Below, one piece after another: positions 18,001 through 63,684 of a DNA stretch of 64,000 nt (positions are counted from its first letter, which is position 1; each line of letters opens with the position of its first letter). The notes beneath the pieces were generated by a model, which was not told the origin of the DNA, made no database searches, and saw only the letters and a program-made list of their open reading frames with translations. A program made the translations under genes and the position numbers. This stretch comes from Macrostomum lignano (lineage: Eukaryota), in assembly GCA_002269645.1 (NCBI GenBank), contig NIVC01000356.1, forward strand, positions 434,001 through 498,000. The letters are read 5' to 3'.

Positions 18001-21000
18001 ACAGAGAGTTGCTGACAGTCAAGAAATCAGCCATTGAGAGTCAGACAGAGAGCTGCTGACAGTCAAGAAACGAGCCGTTGAGAGTCAGACAGAGAGCTGC
18101 TGACAGTCAAGAAACGAGCCGTTGAGAGTCAGACAGTGAGTTGCTGACAGTCAAGAAATGAGCCGTTGAGAGTCAGACAGTGAGTTGCTGACAGTCAAGA
18201 AATGAGCCATTGAGAGTCAGACAGAGAGCTGCTGACAGTCAAGAAACGAGCCGTTGAGAGTCAGACAGAGAGCTGCTGACAGTCAAGAAACGAGCCGTTG
18301 AGAGTCAGACAGAGAGCTGCTGACAGTCAAGAAATGAGCCGTTGAGAGTCAGACAGAGAGCTGCTGACAGTCAAGAAACGAGCCGTTGAGAGTCAGACAG
18401 AGAGCTGCTGACAGTCAAGAAATGAGCCGTTGAGAGTCAGACAGAGCTGCTGACAGTCAAGAAACGAGCCGTTGAGAGTCAGACAGAGAGCTGCTGACAG
18501 TCAAGAAACGAGCCGTTGAGAGTCAGACAGAGAGCTGCTGACAGTCAAGAAATGAGCCGTTGAGAGTCAGACAGAGAGTTGCTGACAGTCAAGAAACGAG
18601 CCATTGAGAGTCAGACAGAGAGCTGCTGACAGTCAAGAAATGAGCCGTTGAGAGTCAGACAGAGCTGCTGACAGTCAAGAAATGAGCCGTTGAGAGTCAG
18701 ACAGTGAGTTGCTGACAGTCAAGAAATGAGCCGTTGAGAGTCAGACAGAGAGCTGCTGACAGTCAAGAAATGAGCCGTTGAGAGTCAGACAGAGAGCTGC
18801 TGACAGTCAAGAAACGAGCCGTTGAGAGTCAGACAGAGAGCTGCTGACAGTCAAGAAACGAGCCGTTGAGAGTCAGACAGAGAGTTGCTGACAGTCAAGA
18901 AATGAGCCGTTGAGTCAGACAGAGAGCTGCTGACAGTCAAGAAACGAGCCGTTGAGAGTCAGACAGAGAGCTGCTGAGAGTCAAGAAATGAGCCGTTGAG
19001 AGTCAGACAGAGCTGCTGACAGTCAAGAAATGAGCCGTTGAGAGTCAGACAGAGAGTTGCTGACAGTCAAGAAATGAGCCGTTGAGAGTCAGACAGTGAG
19101 TTGCTGACAGTCAAGAAATGAGCCGTTGAGAGTCAGACAGTGAGTTGCTGACGGTCAAGAAATGAGCCGTTGAGAGTCAGACAGAGAGCTGCTGACAGTC
19201 AAGAAACGAGCCGTTGAGAGTCAGACAGAGAGCTGCTGACAGTCAAGAAACGAGCCGTTGAGAGTCAGACAGAGAGCTGCTGACAGTCAAGAAATGAGCC
19301 GTTGAGAGTCAGACAGAGAGCTGCTGACAGTCAAGAAATGAGCCGTTGAGAGTCAGACAGAGAGCTGCTGACAGTCAAGAAACGAGCCGTTGAGAGTCAG
19401 ACAGAGAGCTGCTGACAGTCAAGAAACGAGCCGTTGAGAGTCAGACAGAGAGTTGCTGACAGTCAAGAAATGAGCCGTTGAGAGTCAGACAGAGAACTGC
19501 TGACAGTCAAGAAATGAGGCGTTGAGAGTCAAACAGAGAGTTGCTGACAGTCAAGAAACGAGCCGTTGAGAGTCAGACAGAGAGTTGCTGACAGTCAAGA
19601 AACGAGCCGTTGAGAGTCAGACAGAGAGCTGCTGACAGTCAAGAAACGAGCCGTTGAGAGTCAGACAGAGAGTTGCTGACAGTCAAGAAACGAGCCGTTG
19701 AGAGTCAGACAGAGAGCTGCTGACAGTCAAGAAACGAGCCGTTGAGAGTCAGACAGTGAGCCTCAGAGAGACGGCAGGTGGATTTGAAATTATGACTGCG
19801 TGAGATAAGCACTATGAAACCAAGGCCATACAGGATACTTTAACTGATTATCAGCCCACCTTGTCCAGTCCAACTTCCGCTGCCGTGGCCCGCTTGGTGC
19901 CAAGAAAGCTGCCCCCAGTGGCTGTCAGGCCGGTCACGCACTCCCAGGTTAATTGGCGAATATTGCCCCGGGCCAAGCCTTCAAAGCTGCCGTTGACGCC
20001 GAGCACGCGGAAGCCGTTGCTAATGCCGGTGCGCACGAACGAGCGAATGCAGGCGTTGGCGCCGCAGGCGGGGGCTCCAACCATCACTACTAACAGAGTT
20101 GGGGAGGCCGTCCGGGACTGCAGACTGGCCGCGGGTGAGTGCAGCTTCTTTAGTGTCCGGTAGGTGATGAGGTTATTCTGGAACGACTTGCCGCGCAGCT
20201 CAACGGACCTGCACATTTTAGAGAAGGTTATTGCTTTGTTGCTGACGAAATCGGCAAGTAGAACTCAATAATAATTTGCTGCCCTCAAGTTACTCAAGGG
20301 GGGAGGAGCTTCATAAGACAGAAATTTCACAACGCCGAAAATTATGCATGGTCCTTGTTATATTGTTTTCTACGATATGAACTTTCGGTCTTAAAAAGGG
20401 CCTTGCATATTAAGTTTTCGATAATGTGAAATTTCGGTCTTATGAAGGACCATGCAGTAGTTATCAGCGTTGTGAAACTTTGGTCTTATAAAAGCGACCC
20501 ACTCAAAGCACTCTCTCGGAAGTTCTCATCTGATCCCCAGCATCCATTAAGGTCCTTAAATGACCCTTGAAACATCCACTCCGGATTCTCAAATCACCTT
20601 GAAACACCCACTCGGGATTCTCAAATCACCTTGAAACACCCACTCGGGATTCTCAAATGACCTTGAAACACCCACTCGGGAATTTCAAATGACCTTGAAA
20701 CACCCACTCGGGATTCTTAAATGACCTTGAAACACCCACTCAGGATTCTGCAATGACTTAAAAGCATTGGTTTTTGTAACATCTAAAACTCTAAAACACA
20801 CCTGGCATACTCCTTAGCCATGATAGCCTCATTAACCGCCTTAGTTCGCTGAACGCAGTCCATGAGGTTCAGCCGCACAGCCTGATTGGCCTCCAAACTG
20901 ACAACGGTTGACGGCAAGTCGGGATCTGCGCGGGCGTCAACCAACGCCAGGACGGCTTCAGCAGCCATCCGGCAGCCCAGCAGGCGATCGAAAGCCGACG

Positions 21001-24000
21001 GCGCGCCGCCGCGCTGCACGTGGCCGAGCACGGTGATCCGGGTGTCGTAGTTTAGGCGCTGCACAATGGCGTCGCGAACCGAAGCGGCGCTAATCGGCGA
21101 ACCTTCCTTATCGATGGCGCCCTCGGCCACGATTACAATGTTGAGCCGCTTGCCGCCCTGAGTGCGAGCCTGCGGGGTGGAAGGTCGGTGTGAACACACG
21201 CGGGCGACTGGGTATTGGGCCTGACACACTGTAACCCATCAGCTGCTAGCACAAGACCTGACCTGACTCACCACTAAGGTAATTAACCAGATAAGCTGAT
21301 CACCAACCAGCTGATCTGATTCACCAAGGCAATTAACCAGCCGACCTGACCCACTAAGGCAATTAACCAGCTGACCTGACCCACCAAGGCAATTAACCAG
21401 CCGACCTGATCCACTAAGGCAATTAACCAGCTGACCTGACCCACCAAGGCAATTAACCAGCTGACCTGACCCACCAAGGCAATTAACCAGCTGACCTGAC
21501 TCACCAAAGCAATTAACCAGCTGACCTGACCCACCAAGGCAATTAATCAGCTGACCTGACCCACCAAGGCAATTAACCAGCTGACCTGACCCACCAAAGC
21601 AATTAATTAGCTGACCTGACCCACCAAGGCAATTAACCAGCTGACCTGACCCACCAAGGCAATTCACCAGCTGACCTGACCCACCAAGGCAATTAACCAG
21701 CTGACCTAACCCATCAAGGCAATTAACCAGCTGACCTGACCTAACCAAAGCAATTAATCAGCTGACCTGACCCACCAAGGCAATTAACCAGCTGACCTGA
21801 CCTAACCAAAGCAATTAATCAGCTGACCTGACCCACCAACAAGCTGACCTGACACACCAAGGCAATTATTCAGCTGACCTGACCTACCATTCACCAAGGC
21901 AATTAATCAGCTGACCTGACCCAACCAAGGCAATTAATCAGCTGACCTGACCCAACCAAGGCAATTAATCAGCTGACCTGACCCACCAAGGCAATTAACC
22001 AGCTGACCTGACCCACCAAGGCAATTAACCAGCTGACCTGACCCACCAACAAGCTGACCTGACACACCAAGGCAATTATTCAGCTGACCTGACCTACCAT
22101 TCACCAAGGCAATTAACCAGCTGACCTAACCCATCAAGGCAATTAACCAGCTGACCTGACCTAACCAAAGCAATTAATCAGCTGACCTGACCCACCAAGG
22201 CAATTAACCAGCTGACCTGACCCACCAACAAGCTGACCTGACACACCAAGGCAATTATTCAGCTGACCTGACCTACCATTCACCAAGGCAATTAATCAGC
22301 TGACCTGACCCAACCAAGGCAATTAATCAGCTGACCTGACCTAACCAAAGCAATTAATCAGCTGACCTGACCTACCATTCACCAAGGCAATTAATCAGCT
22401 GACCTGACCCAACCAAGGCAATTAATCAGCTGACCTGACCCAACCAAGGCAATTAATCAGCTGACCTGACCCACCAAGGCAATTAATCAGCTGATCTGAC
22501 CCACCAAGGCCGCAAACAAAGCAACCAACCTTGCTCAGATGGTTGCACATCACGTCGGGCCAATCGGGCGCCGGCGGCTCCTCCGGGATGAACAAGAAGT
22601 CAGCCTCGCAGCATAGGGCGGACACCAGCGCCAGGTAGCCGCAGTGCCGGCCCATCACCTCCATGACGAATGCCCGCTGATGGCTCTGAGCAGTTGTTAC
22701 AATGGCGTCGCAAGCCTCCATAATGCGATGCAGGGCGGAGTCTGTGCCAATAGTCATATCTGTGCCGCAGAAGTCGTTATCAATGGAGCCGACCATGCCA
22801 GCAATGTGCAGCAGGCCGTAGTCCATCCTCTGTCGCTCGGTGATGGCGCCGGACCTGTGCAGATCTTCTAGCAGAGCTGGCCACTCGCGTCGGAATAGGT
22901 CCGCGCCTGGAAGGCAAGAACGCGATGCACTTTATATTTTTGCACTCTTTAATTTAAATGTTTAGGCATTGATTTTTTATTTTAATGATACTCTGGATTT
23001 CTGGGAATCTGGAAATTCTGGGATTCTTGAATGTCCGGTGTTTAATTAAGCTTCCTGTGATCATGAGTGTCGGAGATTCGGGCTTCAACAATTAAAGAGG
23101 TTAGAACAAAGACTTTAGGAATTTCAGTAAGGGTATATTAAATATTTATAACTGTGGCGTTTGTGCCCCGGACATTATGAACTCTTAGTGTTTTGCGTAT
23201 GCACCTTCCCTTTGTCTGAATCACTGCGTGTCTGTCTGGTTCCAACATCTCTCTCTGTCTGTCTGTCCGTCTGCGTGTGATCACCCCATTGTCCGTATCT
23301 CTCTGTCTATGTGCGTCCCACTCATGCCTTCCCTCTACGAAGCTCGGGGCGTACCCACCCCAAATATACTTCCTTAAAGGTGCCTCCCACTCCGCTTGGG
23401 AAGGGCACATCTTTTCCGGTATCGCAATTCTCAGCTCAGCAGAGCAAACTAATTCGTGCAACAAGCCAGCCTTTGCCTTCAAAGTTATTACAATAACCTA
23501 AATGTTAGCATTTATAATTTTTGGGTAGTCTAACTTTAGATTCGGATTCTGATATAAAAGGAATAAGGAATTCAAGGACTGTGTTGAAGTTACTAGATAT
23601 GAACATCAGGATTTAAGCATCTAGAAGTTGACAAGCCGTAGAATCAAGATTAGAAAGTTTTGAATTTCCCTCACCTGTCAGCGAGCCGTCGCCTCCAATC
23701 ACCACCAGGTTATTAATACCGCGCCTAACTAAATTGCGAGCCGCTAAAAGGCGCCCTTCGCGCGTACGGAATCGCGCCGACCGAGCCGACCCGATAATGG
23801 TGCCGCCCAGCTGGGTCACATTGGACACCGAGGCCCACGTAGCTTCGCGGATTATCTCGCGGTTGAGCGGCGGCTCTCCGTCACCGATCATGCCCTGGGT
23901 GGGTAACGGCGAGAGCGACAAACTTATACTAGCTGAAGTTTTGACGATAGAATCAAGTTGTCGACGGCCAGACTACTTGCTAATGTCTATGGCCAGACTA

Positions 24001-24637
24001 CTTGCTAGTGTCTATGGCCAGACGATTTGCTAATGTCTATGGCCAGACTACTCACTAATGTCTATGGCCACACTATTTGCTAAGTCTATGGCCAGACTAC
24101 TTGCTAATGTCTATGGCCAGACGATTTGCTAATGTCTATGGCCAGACTACTTGCTAATGTCTATGGCCAGGCTACTTGCTAATGTCTATGGCCAGGCTAC
24201 TTGCTAATGTCTATGGCCAGGCTACTTGCTAATGTCTATGGCCAGGCTACTTGCTAATGTCTATGGCCAGGCTACTTGCTAATGTCTATGGCCAGGCTAC
24301 TTGCTAATGTCTATGGCCAGGCTACTTGCTAACGTCTAGGACCAGGCTACTTGCTTATGTCTAGGCTATGTTCCTTTTATATCTATGACTAGGCTGTGCC
24401 TATTTATGTCTACAGTTAGGCTATGGGCTTATTTCTATGACTAGGCTTTGTGCCTATTTCTATCCATTATGAGTAATTTGCCAAACAAATTACCTCGTAT
24501 CCTTCATAAACCAAATAGACTCGAAATCCGCAGTAGATGCCCATTCTAACTGTGGCTCGAATTGCCGGATTCATGCCCTGCGAGTCGCCGCCAGAAGTGA
24601 GCACAGCCAGGGCGGGACGTTCACCCTGCGGCAGCAT
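15088..24637 (-). CDS. PFK: ATP-dependent 6-phosphofructokinase, eukaryotic two-lobed type, ~817 aa, 7 coding exons
   Basis: Exons 24494-24637, 23675-23894, 22530-22906, 20802-21169, 19860-20208, 17373-17934, 15088-15521 total 2454 bp in frame. Motifs [94 protein letters not shown]. An acceptor at ~24660 suggests an unlocated upstream exon. Confidence 0.95.
15555..16215. repeat. CTGT/CTGC-based compound satellite with ~59-bp higher-order unit (last PFK intron)
   Basis: gtgtgtcttagtgtcagtgtctgtctgtctgtctgcctatctgcctgcc... recurs at 15801, 15860, 15919. Confidence 0.85.
16865..17260. repeat. 21-bp minisatellite (last PFK intron)
   Basis: Unit cttcagggtggccatgggatc, ~18 degenerate copies. Confidence 0.85.
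17960..19765. repeat. 44-bp minisatellite filling PFK intron 5
   Basis: Unit gagccgttgagagtcagacagagagctgctgacagtcaagaaa(c/t), ~40 highly similar copies. Confidence 0.95.
20560..20760. repeat. 32-bp minisatellite in PFK intron 4
   Basis: Unit ccttgaaacacccactcgggattctcaaat(c/g)a, ~6 copies. A MITE-like inverted repeat (cataagac.gaaa / tttcggtcttat) lies at ~20295-20500. Confidence 0.8.
21270..22510. repeat. 30-bp minisatellite filling PFK intron 3
   Basis: Unit caattaa(c/t)cagctgacctgacccaccaagg, ~40 copies. Confidence 0.95.
23968..24345. repeat. 25-bp minisatellite in PFK intron 1
   Basis: Unit tacttgctaatgtctatggccaggc, ~15 copies. Confidence 0.9.
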
Positions 24638-26750
24638 TCTGAGCAGTGTCTCGGTACAGCCTACCAGTTTTGATAAAAATATCATTGCTAGATTGGGTGC
24701 AATGTTTTTTCTCAATTTTCTAAGATTTTCTTGACAGAAGCAACAAATCAAAATATCTTAGACCAATTTTTAAACATCTTGTCTAAAAATGGTTATGATA
24801 AAAATCAAACTTCTGTGAGTGTTATAAGGCAGTCATTTTATAACCAATCATGTCACAGAAAATTTGTAATTACTTTAAGAATTAGGTTTCAATTTCTAGC
24901 TGAAATGCTATTAGAAAAAAATAATTATAGAAATTAGATAAAAAATTGGCAGCACTTAAAAAAACTTTGGATCTAGTTGATAATAAGATCAATGACTATT
25001 AATTAAAATGATAAAATGAAAATTGGTTTTGTTAAATTATATAGCAAAGATTGCAAAGATTATTAGAAACTGGGAATTGAAATTGAATAAAAAGGCTATC
25101 ATTTTCAGAGCTAAAAAGCAGTCTAAAAACATGTTAACAACAATGCATACCTCCAACTTCAAATGCTAAAATGAGTGCAATAATTTTAAATTGTCTGTTG
25201 TTGAATTTTATAAATATATTTGATTGAATGCAAAAGACAGAAATTAACCATGCAATAAAACAATTAGTGAGTCACTATTTATTCTAGCATCCTACATTTT
25301 TCTTTCTACTTTTAATAAGATGAAAGCCAGTAATAATAATATCAATTTAAACCAATATTAGTATAAGTACTTTTTAATTTAAAAACTATTAAAATAGTAA
25401 TTATAAACCTGAAAAAACATTTTGACAATCTAAAAATGACTATATTTGCATATACAAAACTTGTTTTTTACAATAAAAATCACTTATAGTATTTTACAAA
25501 ATACTTACATGATCTTCGACTACCACTGGCATGCACAAAAAGTGAACCAGCCATTTGTTTCTTTTACTGAAAAAAGAAATAATACTTTTATTAGTGATGT
25601 GCAAACTATACCAAATATTATTAAATGCCATGTATTTCATATTCAATGAGATTGAGAACTGACACAATGCAAAGCAATTGGTGGTTTGAGTATGGTAAAT
25701 AGAGTAAAGGCTTATTTACACTGCAATCAAATGAAAGACCAAATCACATCATTTGTTTGACTAAAGAATTTCTAAATTTTTATGTGATCACTTGAAATCT
25801 TAGCTAACTTAGAAAATTTTTAAATTCAGCAACAAAGTTAATAATACGAAGGCTAGTTGATCAACTAGAATGCTATACATTGGTTGCTTGCCTTTTATAC
25901 AACATGCCAAGTTGCACAATACACAAAACTCAAATCAAACCATTCTATTTAAACAACTTTCAATATAGTCTGACTGTCACTTCAAAATTGACTGGTTATC
26001 ACACTAGTTATGTTATTAACTAATTTATTATTTTCCATCACATGAGCCAAAAGTTGCAAACTCTGGCCCGCAGGCCAAATGTGGCCTATAAAGCCTCTTT
26101 ATCTAACCTTTGCAGTCTTTTGAAACTGCACAATAGCAATCTGGCCTATTCAATGTTTGATACTTCTTAGCGCTCTTCTCTTGTCTTGTCTCTTCTTTGC
26201 TCCTCCCTTTTTTCTTTTCTATTCTCCTAGTCTAATTCATCTTTCCTCTTGTCTTATTTCCTTTTTGCTCCTTTATTTCCTCATCTCTTCTTTCTCCTAT
26301 CTTCTTTCTTTTTTATTCCTTTTCATCTCCTCTTTCTTCTAGACTGCAATCATGATCTAGAGTCTAGGTTCTTTATCTAGCCCTTGGAATAAAAAGTTTG
26401 CCAACCCTTGACATAAGCAAAATGAGTAAGTGTGTAAAAACAATGCCTGTTGATTGCTGCTAGAATCCCTGATAAACAAGGTGCAACTGCAAGAAAATCC
26501 TATTCTATGGGCCTACAACTTTTGGCATCATAATAATCAAAATACCAAGAAAGGAAGATAAAAAAGTATAATATGCTAGGTTTTTTGTTAGGCCTAGCTT
26601 GCGTCATATGCCAGTTATATCAACAAGAGCCTTGGCTTTGCCCTCTATATACTAGTATAGATTGTAGACTAGTATTGAATCCAAAGCATAAAATAGTTTT
26701 CTCAAACTTGCTGAAAATATGTATGATTTAGTATTAGACTTAGCTGGAGA

Positions 26751-40999: not shown

Positions 41000-42730
41000 T
41001 TCAAGTCCCGATTTGACAGCTTCAAGTCCCGATTTGACAGCTTCAAGTCCCGATTTGACAGCTTCAAGTCCCGATTTGACAGCTTCAAGTCCCGATTTGA
41101 CAGCTTCAAGTCCCGATTTGACAGCTTCAAGTCCCGATTTGACAGCTTCAAGTCCCATTTTGACAGCTTCAAGTCCCATTTTGACAGCTTCAAGTCCCGA
41201 TTTGACAGTTTCAAGTCCCGATTTGACAGCTTCAAGTCCCGATTTGACAGCTTCGAGTCCCGATTTGACAGCTTCAAGTCCCGATTTGACAGCTTCAAGT
41301 CCCGATTTGACAGCTTCAAGTCCCGATTTGACAGCTTCAAGTCCCGATTTGGCAGTTTCAAGTCCCGATTTGGCAGTTTCAAGTCCCGATTTGACAGCTT
41401 CGAGTCCCGATTTGACAGCTTCAAGTCCCGATTTGACAGCTTCAAGTCCCATTTTGACAGCTTCAAGTCCCATTTTGACAGCTTCAAGTCCCGATTTGAC
41501 AGTTTCAAGTCCCGATTTGACAGCTTCAAGTCCCGATTTGACAGCTTCAAGTCCCATTTTGACAGCTTCAAGTCCCGTTTTGACAGCTTCGAGTCCCATT
41601 TTGACAGCTTCAAGTCCCGATTTGACAGCTTCAAGTCCCGATTTGACAGCTTCAAGTCCCGATTTGACAGCTTCGAGTCCCGATTTGACAGCTTCAAGTC
41701 CCGTTTTGACAGCTTCGAGTCCCATTTTGACAGCTTCAAGTCCCGATTTGACAGCTTCAAGTCCCGATTTGACAGCTTCGAGTCCCGATTTGACAGCTTC
41801 AAGTCCCGATTTGACAGCTTCAAGTCCCATTTTGACAGCTTCAAGTCCCGTTTTGACAGCTTCGAGTCCCGATTTGACAGCATCAAGTCCCGATTTGACA
41901 GCTTCAAGTCCCGATTTGACAGCTTCAAGTCCCGATTTGACAGCTTCAAGTCCCGATTTGACAGCTTCAAGTCCCGATTTGACAGCTTCAAGTCCCGATT
42001 TGACAGCTTCAAGTCCCGATTTGGCAGTTTCAAGTCCCGATTTGGCAGTTTCAAGTCCCGATTTGACAGCTTCAAGTCCCGATTTGACAGCTTCAAGTCC
42101 CGATTTGACAGCTTCAAGTCCCATTTTGACAGCTTCAAGTCCCATTTTGACAGCTTCAAGTCCCGATTTGACAGTTTCAAGTCCCGATTTGACAGCTTCA
42201 AGTCCCGATTTGACAGCTTCAAGTCCCATTTTGACAGCTTCAAGTCCCGTTTTGACAGCTTCGAGTCCCATTTTGACAGCTTCAAGTCCCGATTTGACAG
42301 CTTCAAGTCCCGATTTGACAGCTTCGAGTCCCGATTTGACAGCTTCAAGTCCCGATTTGACAGCTTCAAGTCCCATTTTGACAGCTTCAAGTCCCGTTTT
42401 GACAGCTTCGAGTCCCATTTTGACAGCTTCAAGTCCCGATTTGACAGCTTCAAGTCCCGATTTGACAGCTTCGAGTCCCGATTTGACAGCTTCAAGTCCC
42501 GATTTGACAGCTTCAAGTCCCGATTTGACAGCTTCAAGTCCCGATTTGACAGCTTCAAGTCCCGATTTGGCAGTTTCAATTCCCGATTTGGCAGTTTCAA
42601 GTCCCGATTTGACAGCTTCAAGTCCCGTTTTGACAGCTTCAAGTTACGATTTGACAGCTTCAAGTCCCGATTTGACAGCTTCAAGTCCCGAGCTGTCAAA
42701 TCGGGACTCAAAGCTGTCAAATCGGGACTC
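41000..42730. repeat. 21-bp minisatellite (~80 copies) with higher-order structure and a terminal inversion
   Basis: Unit acagcttcaagtcccgatttg; two inverted units at 42691-42730. Confidence 0.95.
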
Positions 42731-43019
42731 GGAGCGAAGACTTCAGAACCCTAAAAAAGATCTTCAAGCCGCCTTAATGTCCGCAATAAAATAGTTGCAC
42801 GCCTATGTACTAAATTTATTCTGAAAGTCAAGCATTTGTTCCATACAAAAAATCATTTTATTCGTGTAGGATTTCTTGTAAAATTCACAAGCTGCTTATA
42901 AATACATAATTGTTTCATCAGATAAACTTTAAGTTCTTTAACATTTTTGCAGCTAAAGTTTTATTATTTATTTGTATATTTCCATTGTCTCATATCCTCA
43001 GTTGCTAAACCACCGCCAG

Positions 43020-43866
43020 CCTCCAGATCCTCAGCTGCTGGGCCAGCCTCCCAGAGTGTCAGTTGCTGGGCCAGCCTCCCAGATCCTCAGCTGCTGGGCC
43101 AGCCTCCCAGATCCTCAGGTGCTGGGCCAGCCTCCCAGATCCTCAGCTGCTGGGCCAGCCTCCCAGATCCTCAGGTGCTGGGCCAGCCTCCCAGATCCTC
43201 AGCTGCTGGGCCAGCCTCCCAGATCCTCAGCTGCTGGGCCAGCCTCCCAGATCCTCAGGTGCTGGGCCAGCCTCCCAGATCCTCAGCTGCTGGGCCAGCC
43301 TCCCAGATCCTCAGCTGCTGGGCCAGCCTCCCAGATCCTCGGGTGCTGGGCCAGCCTCCCAGATCCTCAGCTGCTGGGCCAGCCTCCCAGATCCTCAGGT
43401 GCTGGGCCAGCCTCCCAGATCCTCAGCTGCTGGGCCAGCCTCCCAGATCCTCAGCTGCTGGGCCAGCCTCCCAGATCCTCAGGTGCTGGGCCAGCCTCCC
43501 AGATCCTCAGCTGCTGGGCCAGCCTCCCAGATCCTCAGCTGCTGGGCCAGCCTCCCAGATCCTCAGCTGCTGGGCCAGCCTCCCAGATCCTCAGCTGCTG
43601 GGCCAGCCTCCCAAATCCTCAGCTGCTGGGCCAGCCTCCCAGATCCTGGGGTGCTGGGCCAGCCTCCCAGATCCTCAGCTGCTGGGCCAGCCTCCCAGAT
43701 CCTCAGGTGCTGGGCCAGCCTCCCAGATCCTCAGGTGCTGGGCCAGCCTCCCAGATCCTCAGGTGCTGGGCCAGCCTCCCAGATCCTCAGCTGCTGGGCC
43801 AGCCTCCCAGATCCTCAGGTGCTGGGCCAGCCTCCCAAATCCTCAGTTGCTGGGCCAGCCTCCCAG
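43020..43866. repeat. 28-bp minisatellite (~30 copies) immediately 5' of the nuclear receptor CDS
   Basis: Unit cctcagctgctgggccagcctcccagat; the same unit recurs at 48646-48760. Confidence 0.95.
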
Positions 43867-43915: not shown

Positions 43916-45859
43916 ATGCCAAAGCAACGCGAATCAAAGCAGCAAGCCTGGCGGCTTCAGAAGCGCCAGCAGTCTGAGCTGAGTGAGCTGGCGGATGCTC
44001 AGCAACAGCAGCCGCAGGGGGAGGCAGGCTCAGTCTGCTCCGTGTGCGGCTGCGACAGGCCAGCGGGCTGCCATTACGGCGCGGTGACCTGCCACGCCTG
44101 CAAGTCGTTTTTCAAGCGCACAGTGCAACACTCGCTGGCCTACGCCTGCATGCGGCTGGCCCGCCACTGCGCTCTCGTGTCCGAGCGGACTCGCGCCTGC
44201 GGCTACTGCCGATTCAGGAAATGCCTTCGCGTCGGGATGCGGCCCCAGCTGGTTAGGTCGTTGAGCGACTGTGTCAACGACGATCAGGATCAGGCATCGT
44301 CTTTGGCCTCATCGACCGCCACCGTCGCTGCCGCAGCCGCCGCCACTCCGTCTGTGGAAGCCGCGGTCGCTGCAGTTGAGGCCGATCTGGTCGAGATTGA
44401 GCCGTTCACCATTGATCAGTCCGGCCTGGACGGACTGCCATTGGAGGAGCGGGTCATCCGGTGCGTCACTCTGGCCTGTGACGGATTTTTAAGCTCTCTG
44501 ATTGTCTGGGCCAAGCGAGTGTCTGGCTTCAATCAGCTGATCATGCAGGACCGAGTGGCCCTGATACAGCGCCGCTGGATGGTGGTGATGATACTGGGGA
44601 TGGCCCGCAGTTCGCATCCGTACACGGACACGCTGCACTTTTGTAGCAATTTCCAGCTGAGCGAAGAGCAGGTAAGCTAATTGCATTCAATATTTTTATC
44701 TATCAGCTTTTCGATCATATCGTCAACCTGTCAATTTTGGTACCTTGTAATCTTATCAAATTTGTCAGCTAATCAAATCTATCAACCTTGTCAACCTATC
44801 AATCAAATCTGTCAACCTTGTCAACCTATCAATCAAGTCTATCAACCTTGAAAACCTATCAATAAGTCTATCAACCCTGAAAACCTATCAATCAAGTCTA
44901 TCAACCTTGAAAACCTATCAATAAGTCTATCAACCTTGTCAAACTATTAATCAAATCTGTCAACCTTGTCAACCTATCAATCAAATCTGTCAACCTTGTC
45001 AACCTATCAATCAAATCTGTCAACCTTGTCAACCCATCAATCAAGTCTATCAACCTTGTCAACCTATCAATCATGTCTATCAACCTTGAAAACCTATCAA
45101 TAAGTCTATCAACCTTGTCAAACTATTAATCAAATCTGTCAACCTTGTCAACCTATCAATCAAATCTGTCAACCTTGTCAACCCATCAATCAAGTCTATC
45201 AACCTTGTCAAACTATCAATCAAATCTGTCAACCTTGTCAACCTATCAATCATGTCTATCAACCTTGTCAACCTATCAATCAAAATTGTCAACCTTGTCA
45301 ACCTATCAATCAAATCTGTCAACCTTGTCAACCTATCAATCAAATCTATCAACCTTGTCAACCTATCAATCAAGTCTATCAATCGTGTCAATCTATCAAT
45401 CAAATCTATCAATCGTGTCAATCTATCAACAAATCTATCAACCTTGTCAACCCATCAACCCAGGCGAGCAGCTTCCGCCTGCCCCGCATTGACCCCCGGG
45501 TGCGCACAATCTGCCAGCGCTACACGCAGCTCAACGTGACCCCGCTGGAGACAAATCTCTTAAGCTATGTTTTGTTCCTGGAGAGCAGCTGCTACTTTGA
45601 TTGGGCCAATCAGGCCGCCATTGAAGAGCTGCAGCTGGGGTATCTTCGCAGGCTCCGTCAGGCCTGTCGCGGCGGAGTGCGCCTGGGTGTCCTGCTGCAG
45701 CTGCACAACGACTTGATGGCAGCCCAGCTGCTCGCTCTCGGCTACATGGACCGGACACTTAACCTGGAGGGCCGGCCACTGCCGCCGCTGGCTAATGAAG
45801 TTCTACAGCACGTGCTGGCGCTCGGCCTTCCCGTCAGCGAGCCCCACAGATACTTCTGA
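43916..45859 (+). CDS. Divergent NR3-type (estrogen-related-receptor-like) nuclear receptor, ~383 aa
   Basis: Exons 43916-44671 and 45464-45859 (phase 0). C4 zinc-finger DBD CSVC...HYGAVTCHACKSFFKRTVQ...CGYCRFRKCLRVGM. LBD WAKRVSGFNQLIMQDRVALIQRRWM..ILGMARSSHPYTDTLHF resembles ERR [40 protein letters not shown]. Confidence 0.8.
44780..45460. repeat. 30-bp minisatellite filling the nuclear receptor intron
   Basis: Unit tcaaccttgtcaacctatcaatcaaatctg; runs up to the 45463 acceptor. Confidence 0.9.
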
Positions 45860-46450
45860 TCCCATATCCTCAAATAGTCTGATCCCATATCCCTTAATAG
45901 TCTGATCCCATATCTCCTAGATCCCATATCCCCTGATAGTCTGATCCCATATCCCTTAATAGTCTGATCCCATATCCCCTAATAGTCTGATCCCATGCCC
46001 CCCTAATAGTCTGATCCCATTCCCCCTAATAGTCTGATCCCATTCCCCCTAATAGTCTGATTCCATTTCCTTTGATAGCTCGTAGCCTGATCCCATATCC
46101 CTTAATAGTCTGATCCCATATCTCCTAGATATCTTCTGATAATCTGATCCCAAATCCCCTAGTGGTCTGATCCCATATCCCCTGATAGTCTGATTTAATG
46201 TCTCCTAATACTCTGATCCCATATCCCCTGATAGTCTGATCCCAAATCCCCTAATAGTCTGATCCCATATCCCCAAAAAGTCTGATCCCATATCCACTAA
46301 TAGTTTGATCCCATACCCCCTAATAGTCTGATCCCATATCCCGAAAAAGTCTGATCTCATATCCCCCGATAGTCTGATCCCATTTCCCCCGATAGGTTGA
46401 TCCCATATCCCGAAATATTCTGATCACATATCCCCTGATAGTCTGATCCC
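45860..46450. repeat. 23-bp minisatellite starting at the receptor stop codon
   Basis: Unit tctgatcccatatcccctaatag. The first unit overlaps the TGA stop at 45857-45859. Confidence 0.9.
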
Positions 46451-46914
46451 ATATCTCCAGGTAATTTCTAGCTATTCTGACTCCGAGTTCTTATTTTATA
46501 TCCCAATTCTAATATTATTATCGAAATTGTGGAAATGTTTAGTAACTGTTATTTGCAGGTATGTCAGAATTCTTTTATGTACCGGTAGTTACTACTCATA
46601 ATTTCTTCTAGTTTTATTTTTCTAACAGTTACCAATGATCAAAAGAACAGTTTTTATTGGTGTCGTTGTTGTGGTAGTGTAAATACCGTATTAGCATATT
46701 GGTTATTTGCTTTTAACTCCTGTTGTTAATGCTGCAGGAGTTGTTATTGTTGCTGTAGTTCGAGTGTGAATCTTTCTACAGTATTTTAGTGTCGTGCGAC
46801 TTCTCTGCTAATGCTATCTGTTGTTTACCGATTGTTGTGAGCTGCGATGCTTTGAGGCTGTGTGCATTGATTTGTACTTTTACTAATAATTTTGCCGCGA
46901 TGCACGGGCAATTT

Positions 46915-47630
46915 CTGTGTGCTGCCACCCCATCTCTATTCCTCCGTGTGCTGCTACCCCCAACCTCTATCCCTCTGTGTGCTGCTACCCCACTCCAATA
47001 TCCCTCTGTGTGCTGCTACCCCACTCCAATATCCCTCTGTGTGCTGCTACCCCACTCCAATATCCCTCTGTGTGCTGCTACCCCACTCCAATATCCCTCT
47101 GTGTGCTGCTACCCCACTACAATATCCCTCTGTGTGCTGCTACCCCACTCCAATATCCCTCTGTGTGCTGCTACCCCACTACAATATCCCTCTGTGTGCT
47201 GCTACCCCACTCCAATATCCCCCTGTGTGCTGCTACCCCCAACCTCTATCCCTCTGTGTGCTGCTACCCCCAACCTCTATCCCTCTGTGTGCTGCTACCC
47301 CCAACCTCTATCCCCCTGTGTGCTGCTACCCCCAACCTCTATCCCTCTGTGTTCTGCTACCCCCAACCTCTATCCCTCTGTGTGCTGCCACCCCCAACCT
47401 CTATCCCTCTGTGTGCTGCTACCCCCAACCTCTATCCCTCTGTGTGCTGCTACCCCCTAACCTCTATCCCCCTGTGTGCTGCTACCCCCAATCTCTATCC
47501 CTCTGTGTGCTGCTACCCCGTCTCTATTCCTCCGTGTTCTGCTACCCCCAACCAGCCAACCTCTATCCCTCTGTGTGCTGCTACCCCACTCCAATATCCC
47601 TCGGTATGCTGCTACCCCACTCCGATATCT
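46915..47630. repeat. 31-bp minisatellite with two variant blocks
   Basis: ctgtgtgctgctaccccactccaatatccct, then ctgtgtgctgctacccccaacctctatccct. Confidence 0.9.
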
Positions 47631-47944
47631 TTCGGTACCCTTTAAGCTTCTCTGTTTGAATTTTAAGCCGTGAATATGCCTGTCTACTTTGCTTTTATGT
47701 TTGCTTGTAGGTTTCTTGTCTTACTTTCTGACTCTGTGGACCATAATGTGAAACTATAAATAAGTAAATATCTCATATGAAGAACTGGATTCTTTTTTTT
47801 CTATCTGTATTTAAAACAAACAATTTCTAAATAATAATGTGTGCAATTGAACCACTATATTTAAATGGAATTTGCTTTGAAGCCTATTTTATAGAAACAT
47901 TTCTTTCTTATATATTAAATTCTAAGTCAGCTGTATCTAGATGG

Positions 47945-48485
47945 CAGTGTGTGGAACCCGTGAAGTGGCAGTGTGGGGGAACCGGTGAGATGGTGTGGGG
48001 GAACCGGTGAGATAGCAGTGTGGGGGAGCCGGTAAGATGGAAGTATGAGGGAACCGGTGAGATGGTGTGGGTGAACCAGTGAGATAGCAGTGTGGGGGAA
48101 CAGGTGAGATGGCAGTGTTGGAGAACCGGTGAGATGGCAGTGTGGGGGAACAGGTGAGATGGCAGTGTGAGGAAACAGGTGAGATGGCAGTGTGGGGGAA
48201 CCGGTGAGATGGCAGTGTGAGGAAACAGGTGAGATGGCAGTGTGAGGAAACAGGTGAGATGGCAGTGTGAGGGAACCGGTGAGATGGCAGTGTTGGAGAA
48301 CCGGTGAGATGGCAGTGTTGGAGAACCGGTGAGATGGCAGTGTGAGGGAACCGGTGAGATGGCAGTGTGGGGGAACAGGTGAGATGGCAGTGTGGGGGAA
48401 CCGGTGAGATGACAGTGTGGGGGAACCGGTGAGATGACAGTGTGGGGGAACCGGTGAGATGACAGTGTGGGGGAACCGGTGAGAT
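47945..48485. repeat. 25-bp minisatellite
   Basis: Unit ggtgagatggcagtgtgggggaacc, ~21 copies. Confidence 0.9.
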
Positions 48486-48518
48486 TGCAGACTGCAGGAT
48501 AACCAAACACCCCTGCAG

Positions 48519-49563
48519 TTTCAGTTGCGGATGTCGGCCAATCAGCAACACTGGGAGGCGATGCGGCGGGAGCGTCAGTTCCAGCGTCGGGCCTTTGCGC
48601 AGCAGAAAATGCAGGTGCGTTCGATCTGGTTGATTTTTCTGATTGTCTCCCAGATCCTCAGTTGCTGGGCCAGCCTCCCAGATCCTCAGTTGCTGGGCCA
48701 GCCTCCCAGATCCTCAGTTGCTGGGTCAGCTTCCCAGATCCCCAGTTGCTGGGTCAGCTGTAACATTTGATTTAGTCAACATTTGCCTGGTCAATTTATC
48801 CACATTATACAGCTAGATAGCTAGCATTGCTGAGTCAAACTTGCTATTCATATACATCTATTTGATCAGGCCGCCGGCTCGGACCCGTCAATGAAGGGCA
48901 CCTTGGACAGCGAGTTGCGCGCCCAACAGCAGGCTTTAGACGCGGCGACCAGGCGACACGCCGAGCTGACGGCCGACGCTGCCGCCACCGCCAGTGGCGC
49001 CGACGCGACTGCCGAGTCTTCGGCTAAGCTGCCGCGCCGTTTCACGGTGGGTTGCTGAATTATACTACTTAATAGGTTCTGCTTATACTACTAATTGGTC
49101 GTCTTAAATGTGTTTTCTGATCGCAAGCGTAGGGTCCTCACTATTTAGGTCCTGACGATCGGCTCATGCGGTAAACGCAGCTGACTCTCGCGCCACGACT
49201 AAGGTTCGAGGTTCGATTCTGTGCACGGCTACATTAATTTGGTACTTGTGCAGGAAACTTGAACAACCCCCAAGGAATAGAGTGTACACATGCCCGACGG
49301 TCAGGGCCTCTGTGTATGAGTGCGTGCCTGTGTACAGTACTGGTGCGCTTGTATGTGCTCAGGATCAGCGAAATGGGCAGAATCACCTCAGCACAGAGAA
49401 GTGGCAAACTGTGCTACTAAAAGTAGAAACATAGGCTTTTATGCAAATAGTTATTAAATTTTCATTTCCAGTCGATCAACTACGCCCAGCAGTGGTGACC
49501 GATGTGCGATGGATCTCTGAAGACGTGACGGACGAGATCGAAAATAAAAGCATGACAGACTAA
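48519..49563 (+). CDS. Uncharacterised spliced protein, helical/coiled-coil-like; 5' end and final frame uncertain
   Basis: GC-rich exons 48519-48614 (FQLRMSANQQHWEAMRRERQFQRRAFAQQKMQ) and 48870-49046 (AAGSDPSMKGTLDSELRAQQQALDAATRRHAELT...LPRRFT) join in phase 0. The terminal exon begins at 49472. Confidence 0.6.
49145..49430 (+). mobile_element. tRNA-derived SINE-like element (intronic)
   Basis: Pol III A-box-like cggctcatgcggtaaacgc (~49160) and B-box ggttcgattc (~49210). No complete cloverleaf. The 3' extent is approximate. Confidence 0.5.
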
Positions 49564-53293: not shown

Positions 53294-56026
53294 ATGTCAT
53301 CAGACCAACCGGCGGCCCCGCCAACGGGCAGGAAGAAGCCGGTCAACCTGACCCTGACCGCTACGGTAACCATAGCAACGCCGTCGCCCAGCTCATCCTC
53401 GGGACCGTCAGATTCAGCCGCCTCAACGATCACGTCGTCGTCGGGCGCATTCGCTTCGGGCGCAGCGGCGTCGGAGTCGATAGACGCCAGCGCGAAGCTC
53501 AACGACGATGGCGCCGAGCTAGACGCCAGCCAGCGAAAGAAGCTGCTCGAGTTTGTGCAGCGAAAGCGCGCAATTGCCGAGCTGCGAAACGACGATTTCA
53601 CCGACATAGTCGAATTGGGCAGCGGCTCCTCCGGCGTGGTGCAACGAGTGCTGCACCAGCCCACGGGCCAAGTGATGGCCAGAAAGCTCATTTATTTGGA
53701 GATCAAACCTACTGTGCGATCGCAGATCATTCGCGAGCTGGAGGTGAGCAATGAGCATTGGCATTGAGCACTGAGCATTGAGCACCGAGCATTGAGCATT
53801 GAGCACCGAGCATTGAGCATTGAGCACTGAGCATTGAGCATTGAGCACTGAGCATTAAGCACTGAGCATTTAGAAATGAGAACTGAGCATTAAGCATTGA
53901 GTACTGAGCATTGATACCGAGCATTGAAGAATTGAGCAGTGAGACCAACCTACCCAAATCAATGTCTAACCCACCCAAACCCATCTCTAACCTACCCAAA
54001 TCTCTAACCTACCCAAATCAATGTCTAACCCACCCAAACCCATCTCTAACCTACCCAAATCTCTAACCTACCCAAATCAATGTCTAACCCACCCAAACCC
54101 ATCTCTAACCTACCCAAATCTCTAACCTACCCAAATCAATGTCTAACCCACCCAAACCCATCTCTAACCTACCCAAATCCATCTCTAACCTACCCAAATC
54201 CGTCTCTAACTTACCCAAACCCGTCTCTAACCTACCCAAATCCATCTCTAATCTACTCAATCCCTCTAACCTACCCAATCCCTCTCTAACCTACCCAAAT
54301 CCATCTCTAACCTACCCAAATCCGTCTCTAACTTACCCAAACCCGTCTCTAACCTACCCACATCCATCTCTAACCTACCCAATCCCTCTCTTACTTACCC
54401 AAATCCATCTCTAACCTACCCAAATCCTCTCTAACCTACCCAATTCCTCTCTAACCTATCCAATCCCTCTAACCTACCCAATCCCTCTCTAACCTACCAA
54501 TCCTACCTAAGACTTGCATCTAACCGTCGTGGCTACTCAATCTCAGTGTAAACCTACCAATTCAAACGGTCAATCCCAAATTCCAGGTCCTGCACTCCTG
54601 CAAAAGTCCCTACATCGTTGGCTACTTCGGCTCATTTCTAGCTGACTCTTCCGCCACCATCTGCATCTGCATGGAGTACATGAACGCTGGCTCCCTGGAT
54701 CTGGTGCTCAAGCAGGCTGGCAGATTGCCCGAACCGATTGTGGCCAAGATCACCCAGTCTGTGCTTCGAGGTTTGGTTTATCTGCGACAGATCAACTGCT
54801 TGCACAGGTAGGTGGGCGGAGTGATGCCTAATTAGTGTTGATATCTGGGATTTCCTATTGGGCGATGGCCGTTAAAGAAGATTTCAGATGAAGCAACTAG
54901 AGAAGCTGGAGACTGTGGTAGAGCAATGAAATTACGGATGATGCACAGGAGTGCTGGGAGAATTCAACAGCCTAGGATCAAGTAGGACGAGGAATTGACC
55001 TAGGAAGATTTATCAACCGAGTTTCAACTCCAACAAAGCAGCTCCGTACGCCGCTGCCCCATTTACAGAGACGTGAAGCCGTCCAACATTCTGGTAAACC
55101 TCGATGGCGAGTGCAAGCTGTGCGACTTCGGCGTGTCCGGCCAGCTGATTGACAGCATGGCTGACAGCTTCGTTGGCACCAGATCGTACATGGCGCCCGA
55201 GCGGCTGAACGGCGAGGAATATTCCATCCTGTCAGACATCTGGTCTCTCGGCCTGAGCTTGATCGAAGTTTCCACCGGGCGCTACCCGATCCCGGAGCCG
55301 GACAGCCGGGATTACACCAGCGTTTTCAGCAGCGACCGCCAGCAGAACCTGCTGGACCACCGGGAGGCCGCTGTGCAAGGGAAACCGCTTAAAGGTAGGG
55401 GCTGAGACATTGGAGAGTGGGGTGCATACATGAGCAACCTTGGGAATCACTCGGCCGTTTCTATTGGCAACACACACATTTAAGTCGCTATTGGCTGAGA
55501 GCATTCACGTGACTACTATTCCGTCCAATAGCGACTTACACGTGTGTGTTGCCAATAGAAACGACCGGGTGAATCCCTAGGTTGCACCCAAGCATGGTGG
55601 GGTGGGTGAGGGAGTGAGGTGGGTGAGGGAGTGAGGCGGGTGAGGGAGTGAGGTGGGTGAGGGAGCAAGTGTTAAAGGAAGAGCTGACGTGCATCATTCT
55701 TATGCAAGGATATGCAGCCGATACAAATTCTACCCCTAAAAAATTGCCCGCTCCCAGGCATGAGCGACTCGCAGACCGGGCCCACCCAGATGGCAATATT
55801 CGAGCTGCTTTCCTACATTGTCTACCAGCAGCCGCCGAAGCTGCCCAGCTTCGCCTTCAGCGAGCAATTCTGCGAATTCGTTGACTGCTGCCTGCGCAAG
55901 GATACAAAGGAGAGAACAAGGCTAGCGGGCCTGCAGGAGCTGGAGTTCCCGCGCATGTACGACTCAGACGAGGCCATCTCGCTTGGGTCCTACCTCAGAG
56001 CGCTGTTAAAAACTCCATTGAAGTAG
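53294..56026 (+). CDS. MAP2K1: Dual-specificity MAP kinase kinase MEK1/2 (Dsor1), ~421 aa, 4 exons
   Basis: Exons 53294-53743, 54587-54807, 55069-55394, 55758-56026 (1266 bp). D-domain [93 protein letters not shown]. Confidence 0.95.
53744..54510. repeat. Two tandem arrays in MEK intron 1
   Basis: 7-bp TGAGCA(C/T) array at 53745-53940, then ~21-bp ccatctctaacctacccaaat array at 53945-54510. Confidence 0.9.
55425..55596 (+). mobile_element. 172-bp palindromic hAT-type MITE in MEK intron 3
   Basis: Same family and length as 6850-7021; 8-bp TSD gtggggtg (55417-55424, 55597-55604). Confidence 0.9.
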
Positions 56027-61796: not shown

Positions 61797-63684
61797 TCAC
61801 GCAGTAGACAATTTGGTGAACTTGGCTGTGAGCTGGGTGCAAATAGTCAGAAGGCGCAGGACGTCAGCTTCTTCGCGAGCGCTGCTCTCGAACTCACGCC
61901 AGGCAGATTGAAGCTTCTCCTCTCGTCGCCTGTAAACTGGCCTCACTCGCCGTGCGACACCGACTGAAGCTTGCAGCTGTTGAGCATGCAGGACTGCCAA
62001 TGTCGATTGCTGCGCCAGAAGGTCCGCCAAAGCATACAAATTCAGGTTGCCTTTCCTGGCTCGTCGATTGAGGGCCAGGTGCCAGCCCTCGACTGAATTG
62101 TTTGTGCGCTCCCTCTGCCTGTAGACAGATAGTTCGTCCAGACTCCAGATACTGCTTGACAGCCATGTCTGCTCCACGTAGCGACACAGCCGCACTAATG
62201 CCTCGGAGTTTGCTGAATCCACCAGAGTTCCGAATGCAGTATAGATATGCGGCGCTGGCAGGTAGATGAGAGCCATCAGCTTCTTGCAAAAAAGCTGTGT
62301 CTCCTTATCGGTTGTGTAGGTCGCGGAAAGGCCAAGGTCTTGGATTTTTCGAAAAATGCTCTGTGCGAAGTGAAATGAGCATCCCTGCAGCTGAGCGTCG
62401 GGGCAGGTTTGATGCAAAGCCTCCCGCATAGCTGCTTCAAAGTCGAGCACAGCTGCCGTGGGTCGAGCTCCTGTCAGCTCGATCAGCCGCTCAAGTACAT
62501 GAACGTAGTCGTGTTTTGATCTTCCAGACATAAGGATTAAGCACAGAGGTACCTGCTTTTCCTTTCCGTCTTGATGGATAAGACCGTGAACTAAAAATGT
62601 ACAGGATTTGATTATTATTTAGTATTAAACGTTTAGTATAGTTGGATTTAGTATTTAGTAGTTTAGTATCAGTAAGATTTAGTTATATAGATTAGTATTA
62701 AAAGATTTAAAGCAAATTAAAAAGTAACTCACCGGAATAAAGCTGCATAAACGGATTTTTAACAACGTAGAATGTTCCATCCATGAACCATTGATTCATA
62801 GTAGTCAGAATCTCCAGTTGCTCATCAGTGGCAAACAACAAATGGCGCTTATGGGTTCTGGCCACGGTGATGTCCGCTTTGAGAAAGTTGGAGTGGAGGG
62901 CCAGCTCTTGAAGTTCAAATCGAAGATCATGTGGATGAGGAGGCTGGCTTCCTGCGCGATATCGGTTAGCGTTTCTAGCCAGCTGCTCAACTGCTGGAAG
63001 ATTAGCGCCCTGCTCACCTCGCAGTGCCTGTGCTATTAGGGCGCTTTCAGCAATCTCTGCCGCTGATTCAAATCGGCATCGCTTTGCTTCGTGCTTCACT
63101 TCCCATTGAATTTCTCTTTTGAGGCCGCCGGCCATGTTGGGCTCGCATATGTGTTGCCGGCTTACATGAAAAGCGCCATCAATTGTCTCTTTAACGGAGC
63201 CGTTACAGTTCAAAGCACCGTTTCGAACCACGCATTTCCAGTATTTACACCCAGCTTTACCTCCATTTCTTCCCAGAATATAACCACGGGAAGATACAAG
63301 CAAATCGCCGCCACGTTCGCTTACGCCCCGCTTTAGTTGAAACTGCTCTGGCTCCACTTGCAAGGGCATTACTTGAGCAGGAAGAGCTGCCGGTGGCGCG
63401 GCGAAAGCTGCTGGTGGATTGTCAAAAGCTGGCAGATCGGCGAAAGCTGCTGGCGGATCGGCAAAGGCTGCAGGCAGATCGGCGGGAGCTGCTGGTGGCT
63501 CGGCGAAAGCTGCTGGTGGATCGGCAAAAGCTGGCAGATCGGCGAAAGCTGCTGGTGGATCGGCAAAAGCTGGCAGCTCGGCGGGAGCTGCTGGTGGCTC
63601 GGCGAAAGCTGCTGGCGGATCGGCTGAACCCAGATCAGAAAACTGGCTTGTGCCAACCTCACCAGCACCATTGAGCGTCTGGGT
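61797..63684 (-). mobile_element. Spliced Mutator (MULE) transposase with FLYWCH domain, intact DDE
   Basis: Exons 62733-63684 and 61797-62590, intron 62591-62732 (GTGAGT..TTTTAG, phase 1). FLYWCH-like LLVSSRGY...YWKC...C.GSV....HIC. Catalytic motifs MDGTF, VLDFE, GCSFH, RTNNSVEGWH. In-frame ATG at 63369 gives 476 aa. Confidence 0.9.

Follow-up and report, generated by a model that had tools for sequence, protein, structure and literature searches.

A Macrostomum lignano nuclear receptor, most probably of NR3 origin, with a CHACKS P-box, altered zinc-finger spacing and a predicted AF-2 helix

A receptor that resembles the estrogen-related receptors (ERRs) in its ligand-binding domain (LBD) and departs from them at the residues that read DNA raises two questions, namely whether it is still an ERR and whether it still recognizes an ERR-type half-site. 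Such a gene lies in a 64,000-nucleotide stretch of the genome of the flatworm Macrostomum lignano (hereafter the window; assembly GCA_002269645.1, scaffold NIVC01000356.1, positions 434,001 to 498,000 of the forward strand). The gene consists of two exons at 43916-45859 (+) and encodes a 383 aa product that is 100% identical to PAA84904.1 ("hypothetical protein BOX15_Mlig028721g2, partial"), deposited for the same scaffold. It corresponds to Mlig028721.g2 and has the published name MlUn1; its 68-aa DNA-binding domain (DBD) is an exact match to 'MlUn1' in supplementary file 3 of Wu and LoVerde 2021, where PAA84904.1 is entered as MLUN1 (PMC8363021). Based on the analyses described below, we lean towards the explanation that MlUn1 is an NR3/ERR-related receptor from a Macrostomum-specific expansion, which acts as a DNA-binding transcription factor with a changed half-site and an ordinary activation function 2 (AF-2).

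The DBD (C41-M108) contains two C4 zinc modules and spans 44036-44239 (+). It matches Pfam zf-C4 (PF00105) over residues 40-109 with E=1.2e-19 and 70.9 bits against a cut-off of 21.1, far above chance level, and all eight conserved zinc cysteines that define a DBD of the nuclear receptor superfamily are present (C41, 44, 59, 62, 78, 85, 95 and 98). In finger 1, C41-S-V-C44 is followed by 14 residues, GCDRPAGCHYGAVT, and by C59-H-A-C62-K-S, giving a C-x2-C-x14-C-x2-C arrangement. The P-box, C-H-A-C-K-S, occupies 44090-44107 (+) with the codons TGC CAC GCC TGC AAG TCG, the histidine codon CAC being located at 44093-44095, and recognition-helix sites 1-4 are H, A, K and S. In the AlphaFold model the P-box falls within a predicted helix (residues 60-71) with a predicted local distance difference test (pLDDT) score above 90. 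Direct reading of the sequence places the D-box, C78-MRLARH-C85, at 44147-44170 (+); it is C-x6-C, one residue above canonical, and is followed by x9 and C95-GY-C98. Finger 1 also carries two extra cysteines, C46 (GCD) and C52 (GCH). The original prediction, made from the sequence with the domain set at 44035-44240, had described CHACKS, x14, C-x6-C and the extra cysteines in GCDR and GCHY, and each of these features was present.

To place these features among relatives, 168 DBDs in the best 151 relatives were surveyed for spacing and P-box. Finger-1 spacing was x13 in 160 of them and x14 in seven, while the D-box was x5 in 145 and x6 in 15; CHACKS occurred in MlUn1 and one paralogue only. Compared with these sequences, the spacing features of MlUn1 are unusual, not unique. 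Cys46 was considered as a substitute zinc ligand and judged unnecessary, since the paralogue MlERR3 carries an equal insertion without the cysteine.

At the recognition helix, MlUn1 has HAKS where ERR has EAKA, with changes at sites 1 and 4 only. Complete combinatorial scans of these four sites in ancestral steroid receptors revealed that sites 2 and 3 chiefly govern non-specific affinity, while the strongest effects of sites 1 and 4, which sit over the bases differing between response elements, are on specificity (PMC11105156). In the M. lignano family, all 13 DBDs compared had A at site 2 and K at site 3; site 1 varied among E, N, V and H and site 4 among A, S and T. Because only specificity sites 1 and 4 have changed, an altered half-site preference of MlUn1, as put forward in the original prediction, is plausible, and because the family varies precisely at the specificity-setting sites, the simplest reading of the alignment is that target sites diversified after duplication. 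In the mechanism that we propose, the kept zinc ligands and DBD fold would allow MlUn1 to act as a DNA-binding transcription factor. It would retain the affinity-type contacts (Ala at site 2, Lys at site 3 and the Lys/Arg of FFKR), and the replacements of Glu by His at site 1 and of Ala by Ser at site 4 would lie over the variable central bases of AGNNCA. MlUn1-4 would then most likely favour a half-site unlike AGGTCA at the central positions, which would set the targets of MlUn1 apart from those of its CEACKA paralogues.

The chief rival to this mechanism is a functional receptor of unchanged specificity, in which HAKS still reads AGGTCA-type sites and what sets the paralogues apart is their expression, partners or ligand, not their targets. 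The site 3 Lys and the FFKR residues, both kept in MlUn1, agree with it. However, the family varies at two specificity sites only and never at affinity sites, as expected if specificity diversified, and CHACKS is conserved in four genes that are otherwise ~40-50% identical. We therefore consider unchanged specificity unlikely, although it deserves serious weight.

The ERR group binds the ERR response element (ERRE), TNAAGGTCA, whose TNA extension is read by the ERR A-box (RGGRQKYKR). The hinge of MlUn1, GMRPQLVRSLSDCVNDDQDQ, contains neither RGGR nor a basic cluster, with GMRPQLVRSLSD in place of RGGRQKYKR, and in the alignment the basic A-box is absent across the whole M. lignano family. The other hallmarks of an ERR DBD are also missing from MlUn1, which has CHACKS in place of CEACKA, and x14 and x6 in place of the canonical x13 and 5-residue D-box. 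Since P-box, A-box and spacing all depart from the ERR pattern and ERR-specific monophyly was not recovered (see below), MlUn1 does not appear to be an ERR in the strict sense; judged from its sequence, "ERR-derived, no longer ERR-type" is a fair description. With the basic A-box missing and the D-box altered, MlUn1 would probably not bind an extended ERRE as an ERR-style monomer, and a dimer with its own spacing rule is more likely; the longer D-box may alter dimer geometry.

The altered and poorly modelled D-box, the extra finger-1 cysteines and the loss of the A-box would also suit a protein whose main role does not depend on its own reading of DNA; it might, for example, heterodimerize with the MlERR paralogues or modulate them as a dominant negative, with the altered DBD adding little. 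We hold this to be extremely unlikely: the DBD is the most conserved part of the protein, with 77% identity between MlUn1 and MlUn4 (compared to ~40% for the LBD and a hinge that is not alignable), which argues for its use, and the recognition helix is modelled confidently.

To which family, then, does a receptor with such a DBD belong? An exhaustive search of 1.84 billion representative proteins returned 7,642 hits, which were led by MlUn4, followed by MlERR3, a read-archive LBD fragment, MlERR4/MlUn6/MlERR1 and the canonical ERRs. MlERR3, which has CEACKA, aligned to residues 38-369 of MlUn1 with E=4.9e-51. When ranked by the LBD only (phmmer), the M. lignano family was followed by ERRs (61-43 bits), steroid receptors (46-35 bits) and the NR2 members HNF4/RXR (~40 bits); in the full-length ranking, too, the ERRs came ahead of the steroid receptors and these ahead of NR2. 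Word-indexed protein searches gave three hits for the full-length protein, none for the DBD only and, for the LBD only, PAA84904.1 itself and one fragment.

Phylogeny of DBD and LBD, a check already named in the original prediction, was run as neighbour joining on 86 sequences (70 DBD and 211 LBD columns). MlUn1 fell into a M. lignano-specific clade (MlERR1-4 and MlUn1-7) with bootstrap values of 97% for DBD+LBD, 80% for LBD and 75% for DBD. This family grouped with NR3, as the combination of ERR, ER and SR with the M. lignano family received 87% on DBD+LBD, a moderate value obtained with references chosen by similarity. An exclusive bipartition of the family with ERR never appeared among the replicates of the LBD-only and combined alignments (0%) and reached 0-2% with the DBD-only alignment; Wu and LoVerde 2021 give a Bayesian posterior probability of 0.56 for the MlERRs within ERR (PMC8363021). 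Structural comparison pointed in the direction of NR3 as well: the top Foldseek matches of the MlUn1 LBD alone were all NR3, including oyster ER 4n1y with a template-modelling (TM) score of 0.85 and ERR-alpha 1xb7 with a TM score of 0.84 and 25% identity. MlUn1 is a nuclear receptor, and sequence and model together indicate that its origin is most probably NR3. The diverged, ERR-like NR3 paralogue of the original prediction is thus upheld by the ERRs ranking first among non-Macrostomum matches, by the NR3 grouping (87%, or 54% for the LBD only), by the NR3 neighbours of the LBD fold and by the CEACKA kept in MlERR3.

A fast-evolving receptor of non-NR3/ERR origin, for example from NR2, could nevertheless have been pulled to NR3 by long branches and sampling. 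In line with this, Wu and LoVerde left MlUn1 unplaced as 'divergent' (PMC8363021), mean DBD identity is nearly equal for ERR (48%) and NR2 (45%), LBD-only support for NR3 is 54%, and RXR-alpha came first in the phmmer search of the PDB with the full-length protein. RXR-alpha was discounted as the closest family, because few PDB chains hold both DBD and LBD and the ranking favours those. We find an origin outside NR3 improbable, given that the LBD points to NR3 both in its sequence ranking and in its structural neighbours, that four CEACKA genes sit in the family clade, that NR3 plus the family reaches 87% on DBD+LBD, and that Cheng et al., as far as their assignment is reported, also chose NR3.

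The order of changes within the family can be approached through the two one-residue insertions (finger 1 and D-box), which in the alignment are common to MlUn1, MlUn4 and MlERR3 alone. MlERR3 shares both insertions yet keeps CEACKA, which points to a CEACKA ancestor with altered spacing that would have preceded the CHACKS genes MlUn1-4.

The LBD of MlUn1 looks conventional. It matches Pfam Hormone_recep (PF00104) with E=1.1e-7 and 32 bits against a cut-off of 23.5. The AlphaFold model has a mean pLDDT of 83.6, with most of the LBD above 90, and Foldseek aligned the LBD to solved nuclear receptor LBDs with TM scores of 0.74-0.85, as expected of the helical-sandwich fold. The ERR-like helix 3-5 and PY.D.L motif that had been noted from the sequence were confirmed, as WAKRVSGF...DRVALIQ and SHPYTDTL align with the corresponding ERR motifs. 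It had also been claimed that the C-terminus is without an obvious acidic AF-2 motif and that coactivator use is possibly non-canonical. The first claim fails, since a helix 12/AF-2 is predicted at aa 360-372, PLANEVLQHVLAL (45785-45823, +), where DSSP assigns a helix in the AlphaFold model. Its core, L361-A-N-E364-V-L366, aligns with ERR LFLEML and MlERR LLSEML with the Glu conserved ("PLANEVLQ" versus ERR "KLFLEMLD" and MlERR PLLSEML), and the codon of Glu364 lies at 45797-45799. Mean pLDDT in 10-residue blocks around helix 12 was 85 for residues 351-360 and 91 for residues 361-370. The helix-3 charge-clamp Lys is kept as K200 in WAK; together with E364 and the helix 360-372, it completes the AF-2 and charge clamp of an ERR. 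Non-canonical coactivator use is consequently unsupported. The LBD is predicted to have a normal NR3-type fold, and because the helix-3 Lys, the helix-12 Glu and the predicted helix 12 are retained, coactivators would probably dock in the canonical way via the ordinary AF-2 groove.

Is the gene intact and in use? Exon 1 (43916-44671, +; aa 1-252) encodes the N-terminal region, the DBD, the hinge and the first part of the LBD in an open frame from the ATG at 43916 to a GT donor at 44672 in phase 0. The single GT...AG intron (44672-45463, +; phase 0) is 792 bp long and consists nearly entirely of a 30-bp tandem array at 44771-45458. Exon 2 (45464-45859, +; aa 253-383) follows the AG acceptor at 45462-45463 in phase 0 and encodes the remaining LBD and the stop; taken alone it is a weak match to Pfam Hormone_recep. 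GC content is 62% in the exons and 34% in the intron. The open reading frame (ORF) is intact, with a canonical GT-AG intron, no stops and all 8 zinc cysteines kept. The splice junction SEEQ/ASSF is the same in the deposited transcript-based PAA84904.1, and the GenBank annotation of GCA_002269645.1 was built solely on genome-guided RNA-seq transcripts (PMC5730564). Since the GenBank models derive from RNA-seq transcripts and the deposited protein has the identical junction, there is indirect evidence, via a transcript-derived model, that MlUn1 is transcribed.

A second copy of the gene is located on NIVC01001592.1 (L003; PAA66082.1, Mlig007341.g1). It has seven coding differences, three synonymous and four non-synonymous, and none of the four amino-acid changes relative to MlUn1 lies in the DBD. 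The intron of Mlig007341.g1 is 432 bp versus 792 bp, being shorter because it has fewer 30-bp units, and the two copies diverge by ~0.5% (aligned columns) in the 1 kb upstream and by ~12% in the 600 bp downstream. Massive recent duplication is known in M. lignano (PMC5730564). In such a recently duplicated genome, rich in repeats, MlUn1 could be a duplicate that has lost its function or is on its way to becoming a pseudogene, which would be in keeping with the position of the gene among minisatellite arrays, with the listed DBD of MlUn3, which is without the HYGAV segment, and with a ratio of non-synonymous to synonymous differences (pN/pS) between the genomic copies that is not clearly below 1. 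Such decay is very improbable in our view: both copies have an uninterrupted ORF and canonical splice sites, the gene model derives from transcripts, no zinc ligand or LBD signature residue has been lost, the LBD is modelled with pLDDT above 90, and conservation between paralogues is much higher in the DBD than in the hinge.

Several observations weigh against MlUn1 being an NR3-derived transcription factor with a changed half-site and an ordinary AF-2, the explanation that we prefer. In the helix scans, activation from the estrogen response element (ERE) persisted in thousands of diverse variants (PMC11105156), and HAKS might likewise keep AGGTCA binding. The D-box area is modelled with low confidence (mean pLDDT 56 in the 10-residue block 81-90), and on the model the finger-1 and D-box insertions might impair DNA binding or dimerisation. 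The sample for the trees was picked by similarity to the query and is thin in NR1, NR4, NR5 and NR6 references, and LBD-only support for NR3 with the M. lignano family is just 54%. Neighbour joining sets the family beside the steroid receptors with ~50%, probably a long-branch effect, and its place within NR3 is provisional. Furthermore, the AF-2 core of MlUn1 (LANEVL) has a weaker hydrophobic content than its ERR counterpart (LFLEML), the pN/pS of 0.43 between the two copies comes from seven differences, too few to interpret, and no literature on DNA binding, expression level or function of MlUn1 was found.

The start of the coding sequence (CDS) deserves separate consideration. In both genomic copies the deposited 'partial' CDS has Q4 as its first residue and begins, in the window at 43925, straight after an AG at 43923-43924 (+), a candidate spliced-leader trans-splice acceptor. 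The M. lignano spliced leader has ATG as its end (PMC8629364), and trans-splicing at 43923-43924 would yield an in-frame M-QRESK... start. UniRef model P0170 has Gln at the position of Met1 in the window. Because the deposited CDS begins at 43925 after an AG, the spliced leader ends in ATG and P0170 has Gln at Met1, the genomic ATG at 43916 may not be the true start. A long upstream ORF that runs through a 28-bp array from 42947 onward was rejected as coding, since the array is stop-free in all three plus-strand frames and the transcript-based CDS begins at 43925.

The searches also returned other sequences. A 1032-bp genomic Logan contig from SRR31628425 (L001) carries the coding sequence of an LBD with 56% identity to that of MlUn1 and of the same VGMRPQLVRSL hinge; its introns lie directly before VGM and after ...IDALQ. 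Based on the similar LBD, the shared hinge and the differently placed introns, the CHACKS-type lineage also exists, with a different gene structure, in another paralogue or species. Several proteins with 3-6 DBDs per chain ranked high for the DBD query (P0010-P0013, P0016, P0019, P0021, P0022, P0025, P0029 and P0032). Their P-boxes are very unusual, e.g., CHACGI, CDACAW and CRSCEE, and they may be real receptors or fused gene models. The 55-aa ENA entry P0171 falls in the receptor's 90%-identity cluster without real similarity and is probably a clustering artefact.

The receptor gene is surrounded by minisatellites at 41000-42691, 43015-43866, 44771-45458, 45855-46455, 46914-47618, 47939-48490 and 48647-48758, with units of 21, 28, 30, 23, 31 and 25 bp and 20-80 copies each. 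Tandem Repeats Finder identified a non-coding array of 28 bp x 30 at 43015-43866, which ends 50 bp before the ATG, and one of 23 bp x 26 at 45855-46455, which starts at the stop codon; the 28-bp unit recurs in four copies at 48647-48758, downstream of the gene. The 30-bp unit of the intron holds AGGTTGAcaAGGTTGA, a half-site-like direct repeat, of which 17 copies within one mismatch lie at 44782-45453 (-). These copies were rejected as binding sites, because a single repeat unit has been amplified and the copy count is uninformative on function.

Elsewhere in the window, a multi-exon 6-phosphofructokinase gene extends over 17314-24757 (-), with five ORF segments matching Pfam PFK (E 1e-51 to 7e-11). 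A tandem array in one of its introns contains TCAAGGTCA three times at 20658-20730, a count not above chance. A protein kinase gene at 54524-56023 (+) has exons matching Pfam Pkinase with E down to 7e-27 and presumably encodes a kinase resembling MAP kinase kinase. At 61800-62618 (-), an ORF with a MULE transposase domain (E=4e-11) is probably a DNA-transposon remnant.

The original prediction treated the gene as new, which it is not. Two gene censuses already carry MlUn1 as a catalogue entry, and both the unusual P-box and the provisional placement in NR3/ERR have been published. Wu and LoVerde 2021 classed MlUn1-4 as 'divergent NRs' with an atypical P-box, reported CHACKS in these four genes, and stated in a comparison table that Cheng et al. 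2021 assigned PAA84904.1 and PAA66082.1 to NR3 (ERR) (PMC8363021). A known clade with this P-box, which the original prediction regarded as telling against its proposal, thus exists in part, as the published group MlUn1-4. In the accessible text of Wu and LoVerde 2021 the His, the spacing changes, the LBD, the AF-2 and the function of MlUn1 are not discussed, and no discussion of a His-first P-box was found in the text of the open literature. With the gene catalogued, the discovery value is small, and the worth lies in follow-up.

MlUn1 can be compared with several known receptors. Closest are MlUn2-4, which in the published list have CHACKS, the C-x6-C D-box and the first extra Cys like MlUn1; the x14 loop is found in MlUn2 and MlUn4 as well, and the listed MlUn3 DBD is without HYGAV (PMC8363021). 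MlERR3 (PAA81301.1) and the other MlERR genes are the nearest relatives of MlUn1 that retain the ERR P-box. MlERR3 has both one-residue insertions, a GM(R/E)PxxxR hinge and a PLLSEML-type AF-2 in common with MlUn1, but has CEACKA instead of CHACKS and is without the extra cysteines. Outside Macrostomum, the ERRs (NR3B; such as human ERR-alpha/gamma and the ERRs of invertebrates) match MlUn1 best, both over the full length and in the LBD only. They share with MlUn1 FFKRT(V/I)Q, WAKxxPGF...D(Q/R)xxLLQ, the S-x-PY beta-turn motif, the AF-2 Glu and the LBD fold; in contrast to MlUn1, they have CEACKA, x13, a D-box of x5 and the basic A-box RGGRQKYKR, and LBD identity is ~23%.

A further comparison is the switch in the steroid receptors from AncSR1 to AncSR2, in which a specificity-site change after duplication gave a new response element, as a natural counterpart to the change from EAKA to HAKS. 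This recognition-helix switch was reportedly described by McKeown 2014 and Starr 2017, and the latter is said to include a map of recognition helices for the ERE and the steroid response element (SRE). In natural MlUn1, a His-first P-box occurs in NR3, the sole subfamily with an exhaustively mapped recognition helix. The maps now cover 160,000 variants on 16 response elements of the form AGNNCA (PMC11838366), and because the NR3 helix has been mapped exhaustively, the prediction for HAKS can be checked against existing data. By analogy, the NR3 expansion in Macrostomum could be a natural replay of the steroid-receptor switch, with paralogues diversifying at sites 1 and 4 only and with the HAKS genes, longer in the finger-1 loop and the D-box, reading an element that is neither ERE/ERRE nor SRE and having their own dimer spacing; we offer this as a tentative and rather doubtful extension. 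If true, it would represent a new class of nuclear-receptor response element outside nematodes. If the pattern of fixed affinity sites and varying specificity sites holds, the family would provide a second, independent case of target-site diversification after duplication in nuclear receptors, in a genetically tractable flatworm. Both cases fall within one subfamily and concern an identical set of four helix sites (EGKA to GSKV in AncSR1 to AncSR2, EAKA to HAKS here; PMC11105156, PMC11838366); they differ in the residues used, H and S in MlUn1, and in the two loop insertions that MlUn1 has in addition.

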